Below are positions 23,240-30,730 of a DNA stretch of 64,000 bases, piece by piece. The DNA is taken from sequence record AP018399.1; one strand, 5' to 3'. Each line of letters begins with the position of its first letter. Position 1 is the first letter of the stretch. The notes beneath the pieces are model-generated. The model made no database searches. It was not told where the DNA came from and saw only the letters and a program-made list of their open reading frames with translations. A program made the translations under genes and the position numbers.

Positions 23240-24220
23240 TTACTCTTCGTCGGTCCACTCAGAATCGTGACCGATGTTGTTGTCGTAGATAGCCCACTCC
23301 ACCATGTCCTTCGGACTGATATCGTAGCCTTCTCCTGCAAGACCAGCACGTAGCTGATTAACTCGCTTAACAAAATCCTCGTGGTTGCAGTCGTTGTGGC
23401 GCATCGTGACCATCATGATGATGGTACCGTCGTTATGCTTTTTAAGTGCATTGTGCGACAGGTGACAGCCGGGGTAGCGCTTGATGAGATACTTCAACTT
23501 GTCGTACTCAACATCACCTTCACCGATGGTGACCGGAATGTGGGCTTCGAAGTAGTTGTCTTCGCCACGGTCTGCCGCAGTGTGCGGATGCCACGGAACA
23601 GTCTCAATCTTCTGACGCACTACACGGTAGCCGCGACCTTCCAGTTCCACGGTGATGCGGTCCACTTCCTCAATGACGGTCTGGTTGGTGCCAACCATAG
23701 TCGAAGAGGTCATCACGTCCTTGATGATGCCGGAAGCCTTGGTGTGTAGGTCAAGCACGACAGCCTTGACGCCAATATCCTTACAGTCAATCAGGAATTG
23801 CTCGTAGGACGGAGCCTGAGCAACGGTGATGTGAATCTCATATGGGAAAGTCTCGTAGGACGGTAGGCTCTGTAGCTTCTCCCAATAATGGGTCTTCTTG
23901 AGCATCATCGCCGCGACTTTATCTTCGTGGATTTTCAGCTTGTACAGGATAGAGCGGGCGACAAGAATCACGTCCACGACGCCATCCGTCAATGCAGCCC
24001 GGTCAACGAAACGGTGACGGGTACCATCGGCATTGTCGAACGGAAGCAGAACCTTTGCCAGTTCACCGCATTCTTCCATCAACTTCAAACCCATCTGCGA
24101 CAGGTTCTTTGTGTCCTTTAGGGACAATTCTTTAATCTTATCGTCTAGTTCTTGCATATATTCCTTGTCGCGTACACCGTCTAGAATTCTAGCATACGCT
24201 TTCGATGGTCGTCTACTCAT
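23240..24220 (-). CDS. MazG-like nucleotide pyrophosphohydrolase fused to an uncharacterised C-terminal domain
   Basis: KLMEECGELAK...DGVVDVILVA MazG acidic motifs; C-terminal YEIHITV...KIETVPWHP...YFEAH domain; start set to ATG 24220 (GGAG SD, after terminator). Confidence 0.7.
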   Translation of the reverse strand: MSRRPSKAYARILDGVRDKEYMQELDDKIKELSLKDTKNLSQMGLKLMEECGELAKVLLPFDNADGTRHRFVDRAALTDGVVDVILVARSILYKLKIHEDKVAAMMLKKTHYWEKLQSLPSYETFPYEIHITVAQAPSYEQFLIDCKDIGVKAVVLDLHTKASGIIKDVMTSSTMVGTNQTVIEEVDRITVELEGRGYRVVRQKIETVPWHPHTAADRGEDNYFEAHIPVTIGEGDVEYDKLKYLIKRYPGCHLSHNALKKHNDGTIIMMVTMRHNDCNHEDFVKRVNQLRAGLAGEGYDISPKDMVEWAIYDNNIGHDSEWTDEE

Positions 24221-24472: not shown

Positions 24473-25033
24473 TTACTTACGAAGCTGGATACCGTCGTCA
24501 ACACCGGTTTCGAAAGCCTTGTTCGAATGGGTGCTGGAAACAACCTTGATATCTTCCAGCTTAATCTTCGGGTAGCCAGCCAGCTTCAACCAGAAGCCCG
24601 ACCACACAAGACCTAGCTGTGTTTCATACGCACGCTTCTGGTCCAGAAGAACACGCTGCTCGTTGGCGAACTCGTCACGGTTGGCTTCAATCTTCTGCGA
24701 CAGGCGAGTGTACAGAGCGGCGTCCATGTTCGGATTCTGTTCCTGAATCCACTGCATGACAGCGCCAGAACCGTTTTCGCCGTAACGGCCTTCCAGTGCA
24801 TCGGCGTAGACCTTCGACAAGTCATCGCGGTACATGGTGTTGACCTGAGCCATTTCACCAATCTGAGTCGAATGCTTACCAAGCAACTGACGGTTGTCGT
24901 TCAGCTTGGCGACCAGAGCGGTTTCAGTGGCGACACCGTAGTTGGCGTACTTGATGTAGCTACCGATAGCCAGAATACCAGCGAGGACGATAGCGGCGAC
25001 GAATGCGCCAAGAATTACGAATGCTGCTTTCAT
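24473..25033 (-). CDS. LemA-like membrane-anchored helical protein
   Basis: N-terminal TM helix, helical body, KIEANRDEFANEQRVLLDQKRAYETQL...WLKLAGYP pattern resembling LemA. Confidence 0.55.
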   Translation of the reverse strand: MKAAFVILGAFVAAIVLAGILAIGSYIKYANYGVATETALVAKLNDNRQLLGKHSTQIGEMAQVNTMYRDDLSKVYADALEGRYGENGSGAVMQWIQEQNPNMDAALYTRLSQKIEANRDEFANEQRVLLDQKRAYETQLGLVWSGFWLKLAGYPKIKLEDIKVVSSTHSNKAFETGVDDGIQLRK

Positions 25034-25053
25034 TTCTTTAAGTTTCCTTGAGG

Positions 25054-26244
25054 TTAGTAGTAGCGGTTTGAACGAGTTGTGACACGATAGTTCGGGACAT
25101 GCAGCCTATTCAGAAGCGAGCCAGAACGATTGTTTGAAGCCCAATCACCACGTTCCAGTTCGAAATGATAGAAGAAAATGGTGGTTCCTGTCAAGACCAA
25201 AAGCTGGATAATTACAAACCAGAGAATGGCAGAGTCAGACGGCGAGTAATCTTCCTTGAGATATTCGAAGTCCTTCATGGCCTTGCGGTGGAAATCACTG
25301 GTGATTGTGGTCACCAGTACGTCCGACAACATAGTGGCATTACCGAACTGCTGACGAGTCACCAAGTCCTTGATGCGGTCACGCAGAAGTACAGCGAGCA
25401 TTTCGTTACCAGCGTTCTTACCGAAGGTCATGGTATCGACCCACGAGAAGGTGTTGTCGGCATCCATACCCACGATGACATTCACGTCGTTCTTCTTGCC
25501 ACCCAGCCATGCACGCTCAAGAGCGTAGCGGTAGTTGGTGTCGGTCGTCTTGACGAAGAGAACGTTGATGTTTACCTGCTTCGACGGTCCAAGGGTGCGA
25601 AGCGCCATGTTCAGTAAATCATTAAGTTCTTTGGCCTGCGGATACGTCACACCCACTTGAATCACACGGTTGATGCGGTAGTAATCGTAGATTCGCGGAT
25701 ACTTAGGAATCAGCGCACCGTACTTGGCCGCATCACCCTCAAGGTTGTCCATCGCGAACAGGCTCTTCGGAGCAGCCTTCACGTAATTGACATAGGATTG
25801 AGTGTTGGATGCCGGTTCTCCAATCTGAACCATCGTCCAGCGAGGCGGTTCCTCGGTACCCTGACGGTTGATACGGTCAATCTCAAGGTTACCGACGCTG
25901 GTGTAGACTCGCCAGTCAACGTCGTAGGAATGTTCGTAGCACGTCGAGCAATGCTGTGTGCAGGTACGAGTCTTGCCGGTGCTTGAGCAAGTGGTGTAGC
26001 AGTTGCAGCGGTACGAGTGTCCGCAGGAAACCTTGACACGTTCCTTGCCGGTAACCTGACCATTGATGATGGCGGTATCGCCCATGTCCTTGTAGTAGAT
26101 GGCAAAAATCACCATGATACTGACAACCGTGGCGATGCCAGCTTGGAGCAAGGCTTCCTTAAAAGTAATCTTGTTCTTGAAAATCAGATGCACCGCAGCA
26201 GCCCAGAGGATGACGACGATGAGGTTAATGACGAAAATTGCCAT
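25054..26244 (-). CDS. Membrane protein (two N-terminal TMs, Cys-rich segment, periplasmic domain, C-terminal TM)
   Basis: Hydrophobic ends; CGHSYRCNCYTTC...CTQHCSTC; start set to ATG 26244 downstream of a consensus promoter. Confidence 0.75.
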   Translation of the reverse strand: MAIFVINLIVVILWAAAVHLIFKNKITFKEALLQAGIATVVSIMVIFAIYYKDMGDTAIINGQVTGKERVKVSCGHSYRCNCYTTCSSTGKTRTCTQHCSTCYEHSYDVDWRVYTSVGNLEIDRINRQGTEEPPRWTMVQIGEPASNTQSYVNYVKAAPKSLFAMDNLEGDAAKYGALIPKYPRIYDYYRINRVIQVGVTYPQAKELNDLLNMALRTLGPSKQVNINVLFVKTTDTNYRYALERAWLGGKKNDVNVIVGMDADNTFSWVDTMTFGKNAGNEMLAVLLRDRIKDLVTRQQFGNATMLSDVLVTTITSDFHRKAMKDFEYLKEDYSPSDSAILWFVIIQLLVLTGTTIFFYHFELERGDWASNNRSGSLLNRLHVPNYRVTTRSNRYY

Positions 26245-26272
26245 TTGGGTGGTTGTCCTAAGTTGAGCCGCT

Positions 26273-26301
26273 ATAATAAACCAACAACATAGACTTGTCA
26301 A
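26273..26301 (-). promoter_or_regulatory. Sigma70 promoter TTGACA-17-TATTAT
   Basis: Consensus -35, 17-nt spacer, 5/6 -10; upstream of the membrane operon. Confidence 0.8.
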
Positions 26302-26308
26302 TAGGGCG

Positions 26309-26350
26309 TAAAAAGAAAGCCCCGAGTCCGCCTAAGCAAACTCGGGGCTT
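26309..26350 (-). terminator. Rho-independent terminator after the structured RNA
   Basis: 11-bp stem AAGCCCCGAGT/ACTCGGGGCTT followed by TCTTTTT. Confidence 0.85.
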
Positions 26351-26354
26351 CCCG

Positions 26355-26592
26355 ACTGTGATGGTGTGCTGTTACGCCAAATGCTCTAAGGGTCTTGGTA
26401 TGCGTTCGACTTATCGTGTGCCACAATTGTCAGCCGTTGAGTCTAGGCTTCGCCCTTCGACCATACATACCAAACTGCGCTTGTCCTTCCCCTCGTGTTC
26501 TACGCCCATCCGCAAGGCACATGCTTTGGGACCGGTTCCACGTCGCAATTCTTTAAAGGATGGCTGCTTCTAAGCCAACCTCCCATCACAGT
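26355..26592 (-). ncRNA. Structured ncRNA mimicking the 23S rRNA GTPase-associated centre (H43/H44, L11 site) with a 170-nt insertion
   Basis: Minus strand reads ACUGUGAUGG-GAGGUUGGCUUAGAAGCAGCCAUCCUUUAAAGAAU-[170 nt]-GCGUAACAGCACA-CCAUCACAGU. The flanks match E. coli 23S 1051-1108 (GCCAGGAUGUUGGCUUAGAAGCAGCCAUCAUUUAAAGAAAGCGUAAUAGCUCACUGGU, recalled) and the ends form a perfect 10-bp closing stem. Confidence 0.85.
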
Positions 26593-26605
26593 TCAGGAGC
26601 GGATA

Positions 26606-27256
26606 TTACCCGAACTTCTTTTGCAAGTCAAGTCGGATGCCGTTGGGCTTGATGGCCTGATGCATCCAGTGTTCGTCAGTCTGAACATGACCCTTGCGGA
26701 CGTACTTCATGACATACTTGTCGAACTCTTCGTACAGGATTTCATCCGCGATTCGCAGAACAGCACCTTCAATCCTTGAAGTATCCAGCGATTCGCAGAT
26801 ATCACGAATCACCTTCTCATCGTAGATTCCATCGTACAGAACCTTGACGTGCGGCATTCCCAGACGGCCTACGCTAACAGTGTAGTCCCAATCATAGCAC
26901 TTGGTACCGTGCCATACGGAGAATACGTAGAAGTACGATTCCAGTTCTTCGTAGACAACCGAATGCTGGGCGTACATATTCTCGCCACAAATTCGGTCAC
27001 CATCCGGAATCATCCAAGCATTTTCCGCCCAAATGCGCTTGACCCAATCACGGCTAGGGTGATGGGCACTATCAATCGAACGGGCATGAATGCCATCCCG
27101 ATACATGGTCGTGTTTTCACCATCCATCTTCTCGGTCAAGATGACACGACGACCGTTGAACTGGTCGGTGGTCTTGATTACTTTGTCGTCCGACTGAACG
27201 CCCGGTGACCACGGCATATGCATGGTCCGGGGGTACTTGAATCGGTTGGCTTTCAT
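26606..27256 (-). CDS. ATP-dependent RNA ligase (single nucleotidyltransferase domain)
   Basis: KYPRTxHxPWSPG, motif I TEKMDGEN, ICGEN, YFYVFSVW, IEGAVLR, KYVR. Confidence 0.88.
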   Translation of the reverse strand: MKANRFKYPRTMHMPWSPGVQSDDKVIKTTDQFNGRRVILTEKMDGENTTMYRDGIHARSIDSAHHPSRDWVKRIWAENAWMIPDGDRICGENMYAQHSVVYEELESYFYVFSVWHGTKCYDWDYTVSVGRLGMPHVKVLYDGIYDEKVIRDICESLDTSRIEGAVLRIADEILYEEFDKYVMKYVRKGHVQTDEHWMHQAIKPNGIRLDLQKKFG

Positions 27257-27285
27257 GACACTATTCCTTTAAATGTTAAGTGTCA

Positions 27286-27314
27286 ATTATAACAGCTTAC
27301 GGGTTCCCTTGCAA
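27286..27314 (-). promoter_or_regulatory. Sigma70 promoter TTGCAA-17-TATAAT driving RNA ligase and ncRNA
   Basis: Consensus -10, 17-nt spacer, 4/6 -35; ~30 nt upstream of the ligase ATG (AAGGA SD). Confidence 0.75.
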
Positions 27315-28082
27315 GGCGTAAGTGTTACGCAACTGGAAGATTTGACCAGTGTTAGGGGCCATAGGCTGAACGCCAACAAGGTCTTGGGCAATCAGGCCGG
27401 GGATGATACGGCGATACGTTTCCACATCTAAGCCACCGGCTGACATATCGACAATACCAATCTCGTCTTCATCTGCACCGCCATGTAGAAGCCTGTCGGC
27501 CATATCGTCAACGTCATCGCAGACGATAACGAAACGAGCGCCGTTGTAGATTTTGGTCATGCGACGAAGTGGCACAGTGTCATCGGTCAATGACTGATAT
27601 GTCTGCTGGCCTAGCACATACTCTCTACGCTGCCCAACTCTTGCGCGACAAATATGCATCAATTCGAATAGATGCTCTTCGGTATTTCGGTCCGGAATGT
27701 CAAAAATGTATACGTCGCTAGTCAAAGCGCCTCGCATATACTCCGGTCGCAGGATTGATTCAATGGATTCAACTTCAAGGGTGTTATAGTCTGCCTTGAA
27801 TACTCCACGAGCCTTCTTGCAATGCCCCAAGTCTTGGAACATTCTATCAACAGCGTACTTACTATGGACACCAAAAGTAATTTCAATAGGGTCTTCGGAA
27901 TACAAGAACTCCCATTCTGCGTAGTTGCTCAGGGCTGTAGTGATACCATGCATACGCTTATATGGAATAAGCGTGAATTGGCAGCTATCCATCGCATTGA
28001 TGATGTTCTGCTGAGTCTTGGTCGGGAATCGTCCTGTCTTATCCAAGAAGAACGTAGTGGGGTCAATTTTAAAGTGTGCCAT
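27297..28082 (-). CDS. Hypothetical protein ending in a copy of a major-capsid-protein motif
   Basis: C-terminal RRIIPGLIAQDLVGVQPM vs MCP RRIIPGTIATELVGVQPM. Confidence 0.7.
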   Translation of the reverse strand: MAHFKIDPTTFFLDKTGRFPTKTQQNIINAMDSCQFTLIPYKRMHGITTALSNYAEWEFLYSEDPIEITFGVHSKYAVDRMFQDLGHCKKARGVFKADYNTLEVESIESILRPEYMRGALTSDVYIFDIPDRNTEEHLFELMHICRARVGQRREYVLGQQTYQSLTDDTVPLRRMTKIYNGARFVIVCDDVDDMADRLLHGGADEDEIGIVDMSAGGLDVETYRRIIPGLIAQDLVGVQPMAPNTGQIFQLRNTYALQGNP

Positions 28083-28510
28083 TAGTACATATACCTGCCA
28101 ATGAATTTGTTCAAAGCATCCATTGACGGCTTGCCGGTAGGCTCATCCGCGTCAATTTCTCCGAACTGGTCAATCAAGAACTGTCGAATTGGGATTAGTT
28201 CAGGGTCAGTCAACAGTTCATACTTGGTCAGCATGAATGGACGAGCCATATCTTCAATCCACATGGCAAGCTGCAAATCAAGCAAGTGCTTACCCAGAGC
28301 ATATCCGTTGACCATTCCGTCAACGGTGTCATAATGATTTACGAAACCGTTACCGGTTGATTCGTAATCGTACATGGCATACGCTGATTCTTCCGAGAAG
28401 TCAGCGTTGGGATAGTTCCGAGCGAACCATTTGTAGTTCTCGGCCTTAGCCCGCCATTTCTTTGATATGTACATAAACAAAAATCCCACGTTTCCGTGGG
28501 ATTTTAGCAC
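28082..28510 (-). CDS. Hypothetical protein
   Basis: 142-aa ORF, TAATG overlap with next gene. Confidence 0.65.
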   Translation of the reverse strand: MLKSHGNVGFLFMYISKKWRAKAENYKWFARNYPNADFSEESAYAMYDYESTGNGFVNHYDTVDGMVNGYALGKHLLDLQLAMWIEDMARPFMLTKYELLTDPELIPIRQFLIDQFGEIDADEPTGKPSMDALNKFIGRYMY

Positions 28511-28525
28511 ATCATTTATTTTGAA

Positions 28526-30226
28526 TCAACCTCGCCACTTACCATTGATGATGTTGATAAGTGTGCGCTTACCGTCTGGATAGACGATGGCGTGGGTTGT
28601 CATCCATGAACTTGGGCCACTGTTGTAACCCATGTCTAGCTGTGAGCTTGTACCCACCTGATAGACACCTTCGTAGATGCCCGGACTGTGACTGTGGCCG
28701 ATGATGGCCTTGGTACCAATCTTACTCATGTTCTGGATAGAACCGCGAGCGCCGTTTGGACCCTTGTCGCCGTGGAATCCTAGTTCGATGTTACCAACTA
28801 CCATTGACTGGTCACGCTTCAAGAACACAGTGTTGTCGTGAGCCTGTAGACCACGCTGCTGGTCTGGATTCAAGCACCAGAATTCAAACGGGTCGAACGC
28901 TTCGAAGCGACCATTGTCCGACTTCTTAACACTCTTGTACTGATGGTACTTCAAGTAGAAATAGAAGCGGGCGTTCTTCGGGTCGTTCAATGGATTGGCT
29001 TCACGTAGCCAACGGTCCAGAGCTTCGTCATGGTTCGACTTCACGATGACGTTCAATGAATCCGGGTCGTTGTAACGGTCAATCAAGTCTGCCGCAATCT
29101 GTAGTTCAGCTTCAACGTCGTCGTTGCCGAATAGATGCTTTGCAAAGTTGGTTAGGTCGTCACCACGATGGTGATGATTGCGTGAGTAGAAGTCGTTCAA
29201 GTCATGGAACACGCGGATTTCTGGACGTAGAACGTTGACGATGCTGTCCTCATCAGAGTACGTAGCAGCTTCGACTTCCTTATCCAAGAACATTGCGTGG
29301 GTATCGCCGGTTACTAGAGCCGCGATACGCTGTCCACCAACGAAGTCGGTTTCGGTGTAGTACGTGTCTAGGTCGTAGAACGAACCGTCTGCTTGACCAT
29401 GCACATGACGAACATGGAAATCTTCTTCGGTCACTTCAACAATCAAAGCGGCGAGACTGTGGTGGAATTCACCCTTGAATCCAGCCTTCGAATCGGTGTA
29501 GTTCGGGACGGTCACTGCGCCAGTCGTAACTAGGAACTTTGGCAATTCCTTGCTAGGAGTAGGAACAGTCTTCATCTGAATCTTCGGATGGCCGAAGATA
29601 GCTGATGAATTACCGGTGTAGCCTTCGAAGCCCGATAGCGGCTGGACAGCGGTCGGCTGAATCTTGACGCCACCAACCAACACAAGTTCCGGACACACCT
29701 TGACGTTACCGTTGACCATGTATTCGTCCAGTGCTGCGTCCCACTTCTCGTGTTCCTTATCGGAGAATACTGATGTAGGATTCTTGTAGCGATATGGAAT
29801 CACTAGAAGGTCAGCACTGTTGACTTCACAGTAGTTGAGTAGTGCAGCGAAGAATGGCTGGTGAATCGGCGTGTTGTTCTGTGCCGAAGTGATTACGAAC
29901 TTACCAACCTTACGTTGACCGTCAGACTTAATTACTTTAACGATATCAGTTGCGCTAGCAGCCTTTTCCTTTGCTGCTGCGATATCGTCACGGAACTTCT
30001 GGACATTTTCAGCGGAAACAGACTTTCCGTTGTCAGAACGAAGTGCCGGTAGGGTGATACCAAGCTGGTGCTTCACACTCAAAGCACGGCGAGCCACAGA
30101 GGCCGACTTGATACCAAAGAACTCTGCTAGCTGTTCGCGTGTCCACTTATGCTTAGCAGCAGTCTTGTAATGGAGAATAAAATCTTCTAGGTCTTCTCTA
30201 CGCTTATCTTTTTGAATCATTTTCAA
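28526..30226 (-). CDS. Calcineurin-like metallophosphoesterase with N-terminal HTH-like region
   Basis: GDTH, FHDLND, SNHD, FHGD, GHSH metal-binding motifs; N-terminal WTREQLAEFFGIKSASVARR. Confidence 0.75.
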   Translation of the reverse strand: MKMIQKDKRREDLEDFILHYKTAAKHKWTREQLAEFFGIKSASVARRALSVKHQLGITLPALRSDNGKSVSAENVQKFRDDIAAAKEKAASATDIVKVIKSDGQRKVGKFVITSAQNNTPIHQPFFAALLNYCEVNSADLLVIPYRYKNPTSVFSDKEHEKWDAALDEYMVNGNVKVCPELVLVGGVKIQPTAVQPLSGFEGYTGNSSAIFGHPKIQMKTVPTPSKELPKFLVTTGAVTVPNYTDSKAGFKGEFHHSLAALIVEVTEEDFHVRHVHGQADGSFYDLDTYYTETDFVGGQRIAALVTGDTHAMFLDKEVEAATYSDEDSIVNVLRPEIRVFHDLNDFYSRNHHHRGDDLTNFAKHLFGNDDVEAELQIAADLIDRYNDPDSLNVIVKSNHDEALDRWLREANPLNDPKNARFYFYLKYHQYKSVKKSDNGRFEAFDPFEFWCLNPDQQRGLQAHDNTVFLKRDQSMVVGNIELGFHGDKGPNGARGSIQNMSKIGTKAIIGHSHSPGIYEGVYQVGTSSQLDMGYNSGPSSWMTTHAIVYPDGKRTLINIINGKWRG

Positions 30227-30235
30227 TATCCTAAG

Positions 30236-30730
30236 TTATTTCTTTTCTGATTCTGACACTATCTGGCCTTCGATGACGTTATCCTCACTGTTACCCATTA
30301 GACGGCGCAATAGTTCGTTACGGTCTTCGACAAGGACAATGTTGTTTGTGGTGTTGCCACCCTTGGCACCGGCTGTCTTGGCACGGGCAATCAACTTGTC
30401 CTTATTTTCCTTCAAATTCGCCCTCTTGCTCGCTGCCGCTAGGGCCACGTTCAAGTGCTGTACGCTGACTTCACCAAGGCGAGCCGCAAACTTAGTGTCT
30501 GCGGTGTCAATCATTTCCTGTAGATTGTCATAACCGGTCATCGCAGCATCGTAAATCTCTTGGTAAGTTTCCTCTAGCTCCGTATCCTTCTCATCGAATT
30601 CCTGATACGGGGTTAGTTCGGTTTTACGCTGATACTTGACGACCTCGGTAGAAGCGGGTTCGATGTTGAAGAACTCTTCTAGCGGATGGTCAACCAGTTC
30701 TTTGATTTGTTCGATTTTGCGGATAGTCAT
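30236..30730 (-). CDS. Terminase small subunit-like (T4 gp16-like)
   Basis: Helical core, A..ARLGEV..Q.L, then GGNTTNNIVLVEDRNELLRRL, comparable to gp16 C-terminal beta/helix pattern. Confidence 0.6.
   Translation of the reverse strand: MTIRKIEQIKELVDHPLEEFFNIEPASTEVVKYQRKTELTPYQEFDEKDTELEETYQEIYDAAMTGYDNLQEMIDTADTKFAARLGEVSVQHLNVALAAASKRANLKENKDKLIARAKTAGAKGGNTTNNIVLVEDRNELLRRLMGNSEDNVIEGQIVSESEKK

Follow-up and report, generated by a model that had tools for sequence, protein, structure and literature searches.

The GTPase-associated centre (GAC) of bacterial 23S rRNA, formed by helices 42 to 44 (H42 to H44; positions 1051-1108, also called the '58-mer' or thiostrepton loop), is the binding site of ribosomal protein uL11. 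Bacteria are well known to use autoregulatory mRNA leaders that mimic rRNA and are bound by ribosomal proteins; those of L10 and L1 are cis-acting 5′ untranslated regions (5′ UTRs) of ribosomal-protein operons that imitate the rRNA protein-binding site loosely. Large noncoding RNAs (ncRNAs) without an assigned function, GOLLD and ROOL, are encoded by phages and prophages, often near tRNA islands (PMC12286853). The locus described here lies in a 64,000-nucleotide stretch of sequence record AP018399.1, the 384,670 bp genome of Xanthomonas citri jumbo phage XacN1; this whole stretch is referred to as the window, its position 1 is record position 124001, and its positions 25000-29000 are 100% identical to 149000-153000 of the phage. 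The minus strand of the window contains a 238 nt RNA (26355-26592, first to last base of its closing stem) that is a near-exact copy of the GAC, located downstream of a gene for an RNA ligase, open reading frame (ORF) 260 (26606-27256). GenBank labels ORF260 a '2′-5′ RNA ligase' and carries no annotation in the gap between ORF260 and ORF259. The original prediction for this segment had joined a promoter, the ligase, an rRNA-mimic RNA and a terminator into a closed two-part cassette. Each of these elements was located on the minus strand where it had been predicted, and the mimicry was recognized as that of the 23S GAC in both sequence and covarying pairs. The bracketing of the segment by a promoter-like site and a terminator also stands, however a functional ligase-RNA system is not supported. 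The RNA belongs to a family that is apparently undescribed and is widespread in phages.

The XacN1 RNA, delimited by motifs, folding and a covariance model, begins 13 nt past the TAA stop codon of the ligase gene, as predicted, with the 5′ strand of its closing stem (26584-26592), which pairs with the 3′ strand at 26355-26363. This stem is H42-like in position, however the H42 sequence of the rRNA has been exchanged for a generic variable stem; all nine modelled pairs covary across the family, and ten consecutive pairs can be formed in XacN1 itself (26592-26583 with 26364-26355). The 5′ half of the GAC module (26583-26548, equivalent to 23S positions 1055-1090; 40 bits with covariance model R1) reads GGGAGGUUGGCUUAGAAGCAGCCAUCCUUUAAAGAAU and is identical to the bacterial large subunit (LSU) rRNA consensus for 1055-1088. 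It comprises H43 with its UUAGAAGCA loop, in which A1067 corresponds to window position 26571, and the UUUAAAGAAU junction. The 3′ half (26377-26364), aligned with 23S 1091-1104, reads GCGUAACAGCACAC and forms the H44 hairpin GC-GUAACA-GC followed by ACAC; it is near-identical to the rRNA and differs in having A at U1101. Between 1090 and 1091, exactly where the original prediction had placed an extra domain, lies a structured insertion of 166 nt plus a UUUG linker (26547-26378, the linker being 26381-26378), identified by its shared insert type and its covariation. With the 23S GAC the RNA has in common its helices, its covariation at 1058:1080 and 1082:1086 and the nucleotides that never vary in loop and junction; it is, however, a free-standing phage gene, about 100-450 nt in length across the family, that lies outside any rRNA.

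Folding of the XacN1 RNA region beats 99 of 100 shuffled sequences (z = −2.8). With Rfam 15, no family exceeds its gathering threshold anywhere in the window, and at E ≤ 10 the interval 26200-26700 gives only partial LSU and terminator-type matches and no ribozyme or intron model. The LSU match covers 51 nt (E 8e-4); with this partial match, and with the ligase gene and the terminator as flanks, a bona fide 23S rRNA gene or fragment was rejected.

Conservation of the structure was assessed in 71 distinct cores, aligned with the insert interiors removed to give 82 ungapped columns. The alignment was anchored on conserved motifs rather than on structure, except in the choice among candidate 3′ motifs, and the structure scored consisted of the rRNA-derived pairs plus the 4-bp basal stem of the insert. 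Pairing was found in 94.1% of cells, with compensatory changes in 18 of the 23 pairs, and the covariation score of 0.64 was reached by none of 500 shuffles (0.16), with slid controls scoring 0.10-0.18. H43, H44, the closing stem and the pairs 1082:1086 and 1087:1102 are all kept by covariation; the 1058:1080 pair is seen as G-C, U-A, A-U and C-G, and the 1082:1086 pair as U-A, C-G and A-U. Invariant among the 71 cores are the loop and junction nucleotides U1060, U1065, C1072, A1073 and A1088, which we take to be tertiary-contact positions, as in the L11-RNA crystal structures. It is almost certain that the XacN1 RNA is a true member of this GAC-mimic family. The copy of Acinetobacter phage ME3 (L210, 2712-3055) has a diverged H43 loop, CUGAAGGUA replacing UUAGAAGCA, and carries U1072 with a U1092-A1099 pair instead of C1072 with C1092-G1099, a change that may reflect covariation within the base triple known from the GAC. 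Locus L110 has U1092-A1099 but retains C1072, making the base-triple pattern inconsistent.

The insertion is always found at 1090/1091, ranges from 41 to 340 nt, and leaves the core through a 4-bp covarying stem at this single site. The shortest inserts, of 41-43 nt, are hairpin-sized and occur in L091 and L094, where the full GAC module is kept; L091 measures about 105 nt in all. Inserts sort into distinct conserved subfamilies with their own covariation. The XacN1 type, common to loci L088, L090, L143 and L177 and to phage ME3, has its own conserved helices and motifs, represented in XacN1 by GGGGAAGGACAAGCGCAGUUUG, GGGCGAAGCC and AAGACCCUUAGAGCAUUUG, and 26 of its 46 alifold-predicted pairs show compensatory changes; another subfamily, with CACCCCGNNANNGGUAAGG, accounts for 17 of 58 members. 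The earlier idea that the insertion is a removable intervening sequence does not fit a domain that is conserved, covarying and structured, with no match to a group I intron or other ribozyme. Comparison of the inserts with an rRNA locus (blastn-short, 23S covered to about position 2500) gave chance-level matches, and a fuzzy search for the sarcin-ricin loop motif gave one weak match among 58 inserts.

Scanning of IMG/VR with the exact H43 motif TTAGAAGCAGCCAYCNTTTAAAGA identified 83 viral loci, of which 82 are not rRNA and one (L148) is true rRNA. The 82 leave the rRNA sequence directly after AAAGAGU and share one layout, in which GU-R is followed by a variable stretch, UUUG-GCGUAAYAGCACAC and a stem sequence that complements the 5′ flank. 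A second scan of IMG/VR, with the family-specific 3′ motif, returned at least 119 loci and added at least 83 distinct copies, bringing both scans together to about 140 distinct RNA copies among the matches listed. Cultured carriers include phages GAP32, CBB, BF, the pEa_SNUABM phages, XbC2, fHe-Yen9-03/04, pf16, RSP15, Astolliot, Milchi, Aeromonas phage 4_4572, UNO-G1W1, Paenibacillus phage Pd_22F, Vibrio phage 2.275.O and Acinetobacter phage ME3, and the site of the RNA is unannotated in nearly all of their records. The family is rare in bacterial genomes, with 44 matches in 185,579 species, mostly in metagenome-assembled genomes and Clostridia, 23 of which have a recognisable 5′ half. At the Rfam 15 gathering threshold, 13 family loci contained tRNAs and one unrelated group I intron, and no GOLLD, ROOL or other phage ncRNA. 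This intron (RF00028, 72 bits) lies at 2334-2589 of L126, about 2.6 kb upstream of the GAC-mimic RNA. No description of a phage GAC mimic was found in the full-text literature searched, which included searches for the H43 sequence string and excepted subscription-only journals.

Members of the family are typically found among tRNA genes, which are present at 47 of the 58 loci of the first set and, among the matches listed, at 51 of 83 further distinct copies. All of these tRNAs are on the strand of the RNA (383 of 383 in the second set, among the matches listed), and in the first set (n = 58) 16 copies have a tRNA no more than 50 nt upstream and 23 have one no more than 50 nt downstream; the tRNA context was confirmed by Rfam on 13 family loci. 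No recurrent protein neighbour emerged from all-against-all clustering of 711 flanking ORFs, which grouped only near-identical contigs. At L135, a perfect TTGACA-16-TATAAT promoter sequence directly precedes the RNA copy. Because of the tRNA-array setting, the lack of a recurrent protein neighbour and the strong promoter sequences that some copies have of their own, the RNA is, to judge from its sequence context, an autonomous gene, its transcription usually shared with tRNAs or started at a promoter of its own. XacN1 departs from this pattern in having no tRNA genes in its 64-kb window.

The RNA joins two known kinds of element, the tRNA-island ncRNAs of phages and the rRNA mimics. Like GOLLD and ROOL, it is phage-encoded, found in or beside tRNA arrays, without a protein partner in cis and without an assigned function, however it is much smaller, has no Rfam match to either, and its distinguishing feature is that it mimics a ribosomal functional centre, not that it has a novel ornate fold. 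The small stable RNAs rnaC and rnaD of phage T4 (species 1 and 2), also without an assigned function, likewise lie in a tRNA cluster, on the strand of the tRNA genes. They were rejected as relatives, since model R1 scores at most 5 bits over their interval and its best match in the 10-kb stretch is 11 bits (E 0.15), and no GAC motif was found in rnaC or rnaD. In comparison to the ribosomal-protein leaders, the GAC-mimic RNA is a near-exact copy, is encoded by phages, and is followed by a terminator or by tRNAs. A leader function as a cis-acting 5′ UTR was rejected, as a terminator follows the RNA in XacN1 and tRNAs without a recurrent ORF flank it elsewhere.

The gene upstream of the RNA, ORF260, encodes, by sequence and modelled fold, a stand-alone ATP-dependent RNA ligase of 216 amino acids that consists of a nucleotidyltransferase domain only, in line with the RNA ligase of the original prediction. 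It matches the Pfam family RNA_ligase (PF09414; E 6e-26, 92 bits against a cut-off of 27) and phrog_34045 (E 2e-132). Motif I reads EKMDGEN, conforming to KxDGxN with K43 as its lysine, and K43, D45, G46, E47, N48, E163, G164, R168, K184 and R187 are invariant across 50 homologues. Because a sequence search of the PDB was uninformative, returning only spurious fatty-acid-binding-protein matches and, when a profile was used, weak ligase matches, a fold search was brought in. The AlphaFold (AF2) model (predicted local distance difference test score 89.6) gave as top Foldseek matches the adenylyltransferase domains of archaeal Rnl3 and Naegleria Rnl5 (E 2e-6) and of T4 Rnl2 (E 2e-5). ORF260 thus shares the adenylyltransferase fold, the motif I lysine and the motif IV and V residues of Rnl2 (T4), Rnl3 (Pab1020, MthRnl) and Rnl5 (NgrRnl, DraRnl), at template modelling scores of about 0.55 and 15-19% identity. 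Its nucleotidyltransferase domain spans all 216 residues, however, without the C-terminal domain of Rnl1 to Rnl4 or the N-terminal OB domain of Rnl5, and a conserved motif particular to it, KYPRTxHxPWS, lies at the N-terminus. The alternative implied by the GenBank label, a 2′-5′ RNA ligase/LigT (2H phosphoesterase), was rejected, with no 2H match in Pfam or NCBIfam. Since the modelled fold and the motifs are those of an adenylyltransferase, the GenBank label is a misnomer. We regard ORF260 as an unexceptional addition to an established family of enzymes, with general RNA repair or the sealing of nicks as its probable role.

Jumbo and huge phages often encode homologues that are about 50% identical to ORF260, with 160 confirmed stretches in IMG/VR and named carriers that include RsoM2USA, SCTP-2, the Caulobacter CcrSC group, Atu_ph07, Phosso, ME3 and the LR75xxxx huge phages. 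The homologue of Ralstonia phage RsoM2USA (L209, 3593-4618) is a protein of 342 amino acids with a 136-residue N-terminal extension, of the phrog_24030 type. As ORF260 has no such extension, the family exists, by these sequences, both with and without an extra N-terminal domain. A gene product of T4 that RefSeq calls 'RNA ligase', encoded by 57B near the T4 tRNA cluster (L307, 7953-8411), was rejected as a relative (BLASTP E 0.55). Among 80 homologue loci no recurrent partner gene was found; a cluster present at 18 loci proved to be an out-of-frame ORF within the ligase gene itself, and no Pfam match resembling Pnk, the end-healing kinase/phosphatase that accompanies the ligase in tRNA repair of the T4 Rnl1/Pnk type, was found in the 13 neighbouring ORFs scanned around the XacN1 ligase. 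By eye only, a small neighbouring protein at seven ligase loci (L002-L081) resembles SpoT/Mesh1-type HD hydrolases, and a neighbour at nine (L002-L081) resembles nucleoside deoxyribosyltransferases. tRNA genes are present at 13 of the 80 loci, always on the ligase strand, and at L033, L047, L054 and L062 the ligase lies inside a tRNA array.

The original prediction had put forward co-occurrence of the ligase clade with the RNA as its own check, and rarity of the RNA beside ligase homologues as its refutation; at the loci compared, the outcome was the latter. None of the 80 ligase loci (±3 kb) contains the RNA under three kinds of search: the exact motif, a 30-mer allowing at most five mismatches, and model R1, which recovers XacN1, L091 and L102 at 40-76 bits and finds nothing better than E 2.4 at the ligase loci. 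Conversely, no ligase homologue is present in the 787 kb and 847 kb of sequence flanking the approximately 140 distinct RNA copies among the matches listed, a search in which the surroundings of each metagenomic copy were covered over at most about 15 kb. The IMG/VR contig lists of ligase and RNA, among the matches listed, have no contig in common. At 56 of 79 ligase loci the next ORF begins within 60 nt of the ligase stop codon, leaving no space for such an RNA. Among cultured phages, only XacN1 and Acinetobacter phage ME3 carry both genes, which are 32 kb apart in ME3; the ligase homologue of RsoM2USA lies in an unrelated neighbourhood with no synteny to XacN1. The adjacency of the ligase to the RNA is therefore very likely not a conserved system. 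Both genes are characteristic of large phages with abundant translation genes, and since both tend to adjoin tRNA islands, the XacN1 arrangement may be the remnant of such an island.

The transcription signals around the two genes were found as predicted. Upstream of the ligase is a sigma70-like promoter, TTGCAA-17-TATAAT with a TG extended -10 (27314-27286, minus strand, 10/12 match), the -10 of which ends 30 nt ahead of the ATG, a spacing it shares with four other strong minus-strand sites in the window, and direct reading of the sequence places an AAGGA Shine-Dalgarno motif (27270-27266, minus strand) 8 nt before this ATG at 27256. A weaker promoter-like site that the original prediction did not list, TTGACT-17-TAATAT (26631-26603, minus strand, 9/12 match), falls within the last part of the ligase gene. 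Its -10 ends 10 nt upstream of the RNA closing stem, and it may be the RNA's own start of transcription. Sites of at least 9/12 occur at the equivalent position in 6 of 56 family members, one of them a perfect 12/12, compared to 1 of 56 and 1 of 53 in controls. Following the RNA is a strong intrinsic terminator (26350-26310, minus strand), consisting of a G+C-rich 14-bp hairpin and then UUUCUUUUU, with a folding energy of about −30 kcal/mol and partial Rfam terminator-type matches, and the next gene has its own promoter, TTGACA-17-TATTAT (26301-26273, minus strand, 11/12 match). Over the 6-kb region, the number of promoter-like sites as a class (9) shows no enrichment over expectation (6.9 ± 2.5). 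Five of the nine highest-scoring sites on the minus strand of the 64-kb window nevertheless end 29-47 nt ahead of the start of an ORF, which makes use of the predicted sigma70-type promoters by XacN1 plausible.

The ligase promoter overlaps the final codons and stop of the preceding gene, ORF261, and lies within a piece of that gene resembling the N-terminal region of the T4-type major capsid protein (MCP) gp23. ORF261 encodes 261 amino acids and is otherwise an orphan; its C-terminus (27297-27400, minus strand), the last 32-35 residues of which include …YRRIIPGLIAQDLVGVQPMAPNTGQIFQLRNTYA…, matches Pfam Gp23 (E 4e-8), phrog_138 and phrog_12830. In tblastn searches only this short C-terminal piece was found, in MCP genes of T4-like phages of Yersinia, Aeromonas, Rhizobium and Synechococcus, and it looks like a recombination scar or gene fragment. 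ORF261 was rejected as the first exon of a split MCP gene, its gp23-like part being 32-35 residues and nothing MCP-like being found in the two downstream ORFs scanned. Elsewhere in the window, ORF257 (23240-24157, minus strand), annotated as a hypothetical protein, is MazG-like pyrophosphatase by PHROGs (phrog_1247, E 1e-121). Its C-terminal approximately 200 residues, without an assigned function, contain the HxT/HxP-like motifs EIHITV and EAHIPV, which by eye are 2H-phosphoesterase-like. ORF257 was considered as an RNA-repair partner on the strength of these motifs and rejected, with no Pfam or PDB support and a MazG-like PHROGs assignment. ORF264 (30236-30730, minus strand), recorded as a 'predicted ORF', resembles the small subunit of terminase (phrog_445, E 3e-30) and is located about 8 kb from the large terminase subunit gene, ORF255, and ORF263 matches a T5 A1-like DNA transfer protein (phrog_1745).

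The preferred reading of the locus, to which we give an even chance, is that the ligase and the RNA are two independent genes, neighbours only in XacN1, and that the RNA imitates the base of the ribosomal stalk, acting in trans. Within tRNA arrays the RNA would be co-transcribed with the tRNAs and processed alongside them, and the XacN1 copy would have been displaced from such an array. Transcripts could reach this copy from the ligase promoter by read-through, could start at its own weak promoter, or could arise in both ways, and would end at the terminator. The RNA would adopt the stalk-base fold and compete with ribosomes for a conserved ligand of this site, most likely uL11, with a translational GTPase, RelA or a site-recognising toxin as alternatives. 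The outcome would be altered host translation or stress signalling during infection, with the variable insert contributing a further function or partner peculiar to each lineage. Because near-identity to rRNA is kept in phages of unrelated hosts, the RNA appears to be held to the same constraints as the ribosome, namely its tertiary fold and conserved host ligands. uL11 binds the GAC domain autonomously and is required for RelA activation, and competition for uL11 would be the most economical hypothesis. Whether the RNA works through mimicry toward GAC ligands at all is evenly balanced. The broader proposal, that a trans-acting GAC copy in large phages of many bacterial phyla captures uL11, EF-G, RelA or a GAC-targeting toxin alongside phage tRNAs, is tentative, at slightly under an even chance. 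Several points weigh against the preferred reading. The insertion at 1090/1091 lies in the three-way junction and could block binding of uL11 or uL10, and some divergent members have altered loop positions 1067-1070, which argues against a single universal ligand. The possession of both genes by XacN1 and ME3 exceeds chance alone, the 13-nt spacing and single terminator in XacN1 could reflect a functional link specific to this phage, and the flank search had the finite reach given above.

The Rhs toxin Tre23 ADP-ribosylates H44 of 23S rRNA at exactly positions 1095-1098, providing a precedent for the GAC as a target in biological conflict (PMC8661411). The RNA could accordingly be a decoy for, or inhibitor of, a GAC-targeting toxin, presenting the H43/H44 surface and sparing the ribosomes, with the XacN1 ligase perhaps resealing cleaved RNA. 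Such a decoy, which would resemble the role proposed for phage tRNAs against anticodon nucleases, is made plausible by the existence of a toxin of this kind, but it is an unlikely reading. The high conservation of the H43 and H44 loops and the position of the RNA in tRNA arrays would both suit such a decoy. These arrays are widely read as counter-defence against tRNA-targeting nucleases. No anti-phage defence system is known to be aimed at the GAC, however, and a stoichiometric decoy would be weak against a catalytic toxin unless it bound as an inhibitor. A repair step would fall outside the function of the family, since the ligase is missing beside every other RNA copy among the matches listed. 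It is likewise unlikely that the GAC module is a mere stable, possibly uL11-capped handle protecting and displaying a functional insert, which might act as an sRNA-like, protein-binding or RNA-binding element particular to each phage lineage. The covarying insert subfamilies, the spread of insert lengths and the constant exit through one 4-bp stem are what a handle would predict, however a scaffold would have no need to stay nearly identical to rRNA for 50 nt across phages whose hosts are unrelated, and the two loci with hairpin-sized inserts still carry a complete module.

A direct action of the ligase on the RNA, as one system in which it seals the 1090/1091 junction after removal of the insert or circularises the paired ends, was the mechanism first proposed, and is now very improbable. 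In its favour, the two genes of XacN1, 13 nt apart, are enclosed by a single promoter-like site and a single terminator, base pairing of the RNA ends would bring its 5′ and 3′ termini next to each other, and ME3 likewise carries both genes. Against this, the two genes do not co-localise in the flanks of the RNA copies listed or at the 80 ligase loci, those of ME3 are distant from one another, the insert is unlike an intron in its conservation and structure, and the RNA is preceded by a promoter-like site, as in other members. That the RNA is a non-functional captured fragment of host 23S rDNA, or a cis-acting leader through which a ribosomal protein autoregulates a neighbouring gene, is hardly credible. 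The identity of the H43 part to the rRNA consensus would fit a captured fragment, and bacterial leaders of the kind described above would be a model for the second form, however the family data largely refute both: the RNA occurs in many copies (at least 119 loci in one scan) of a single non-rRNA architecture with compensatory changes and non-rRNA flanks, and it is followed in XacN1 by a terminator and no ORF, and in other phages lies between tRNAs with no recurrent ORF.

The analysis corrects the annotation of ORF260 and adds an unannotated RNA gene to reference phages including GAP32, CBB, pf16, RSP15 and ME3. The tRNA arrays of phages are being reinterpreted in terms of translational takeover and counter-defence, and this RNA is an overlooked but consistent passenger of them. 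Itself not a tRNA, it copies near-exactly a ribosomal meeting point of uL11, the L10/L12 stalk, EF-G, EF-Tu and RelA-dependent signalling, a site attacked by thiopeptide antibiotics and by at least one bacterial toxin. If the proposed function is true, the family would offer structural study a compact, highly structured natural RNA combining the GAC with modular inserts, and would hint at undiscovered host factors or defences aimed at the stalk base. Demonstration of trans-acting mimicry of a ribosomal functional centre would make this a new class of viral RNA, and would represent a new viral route to tune or shield host ribosomes.

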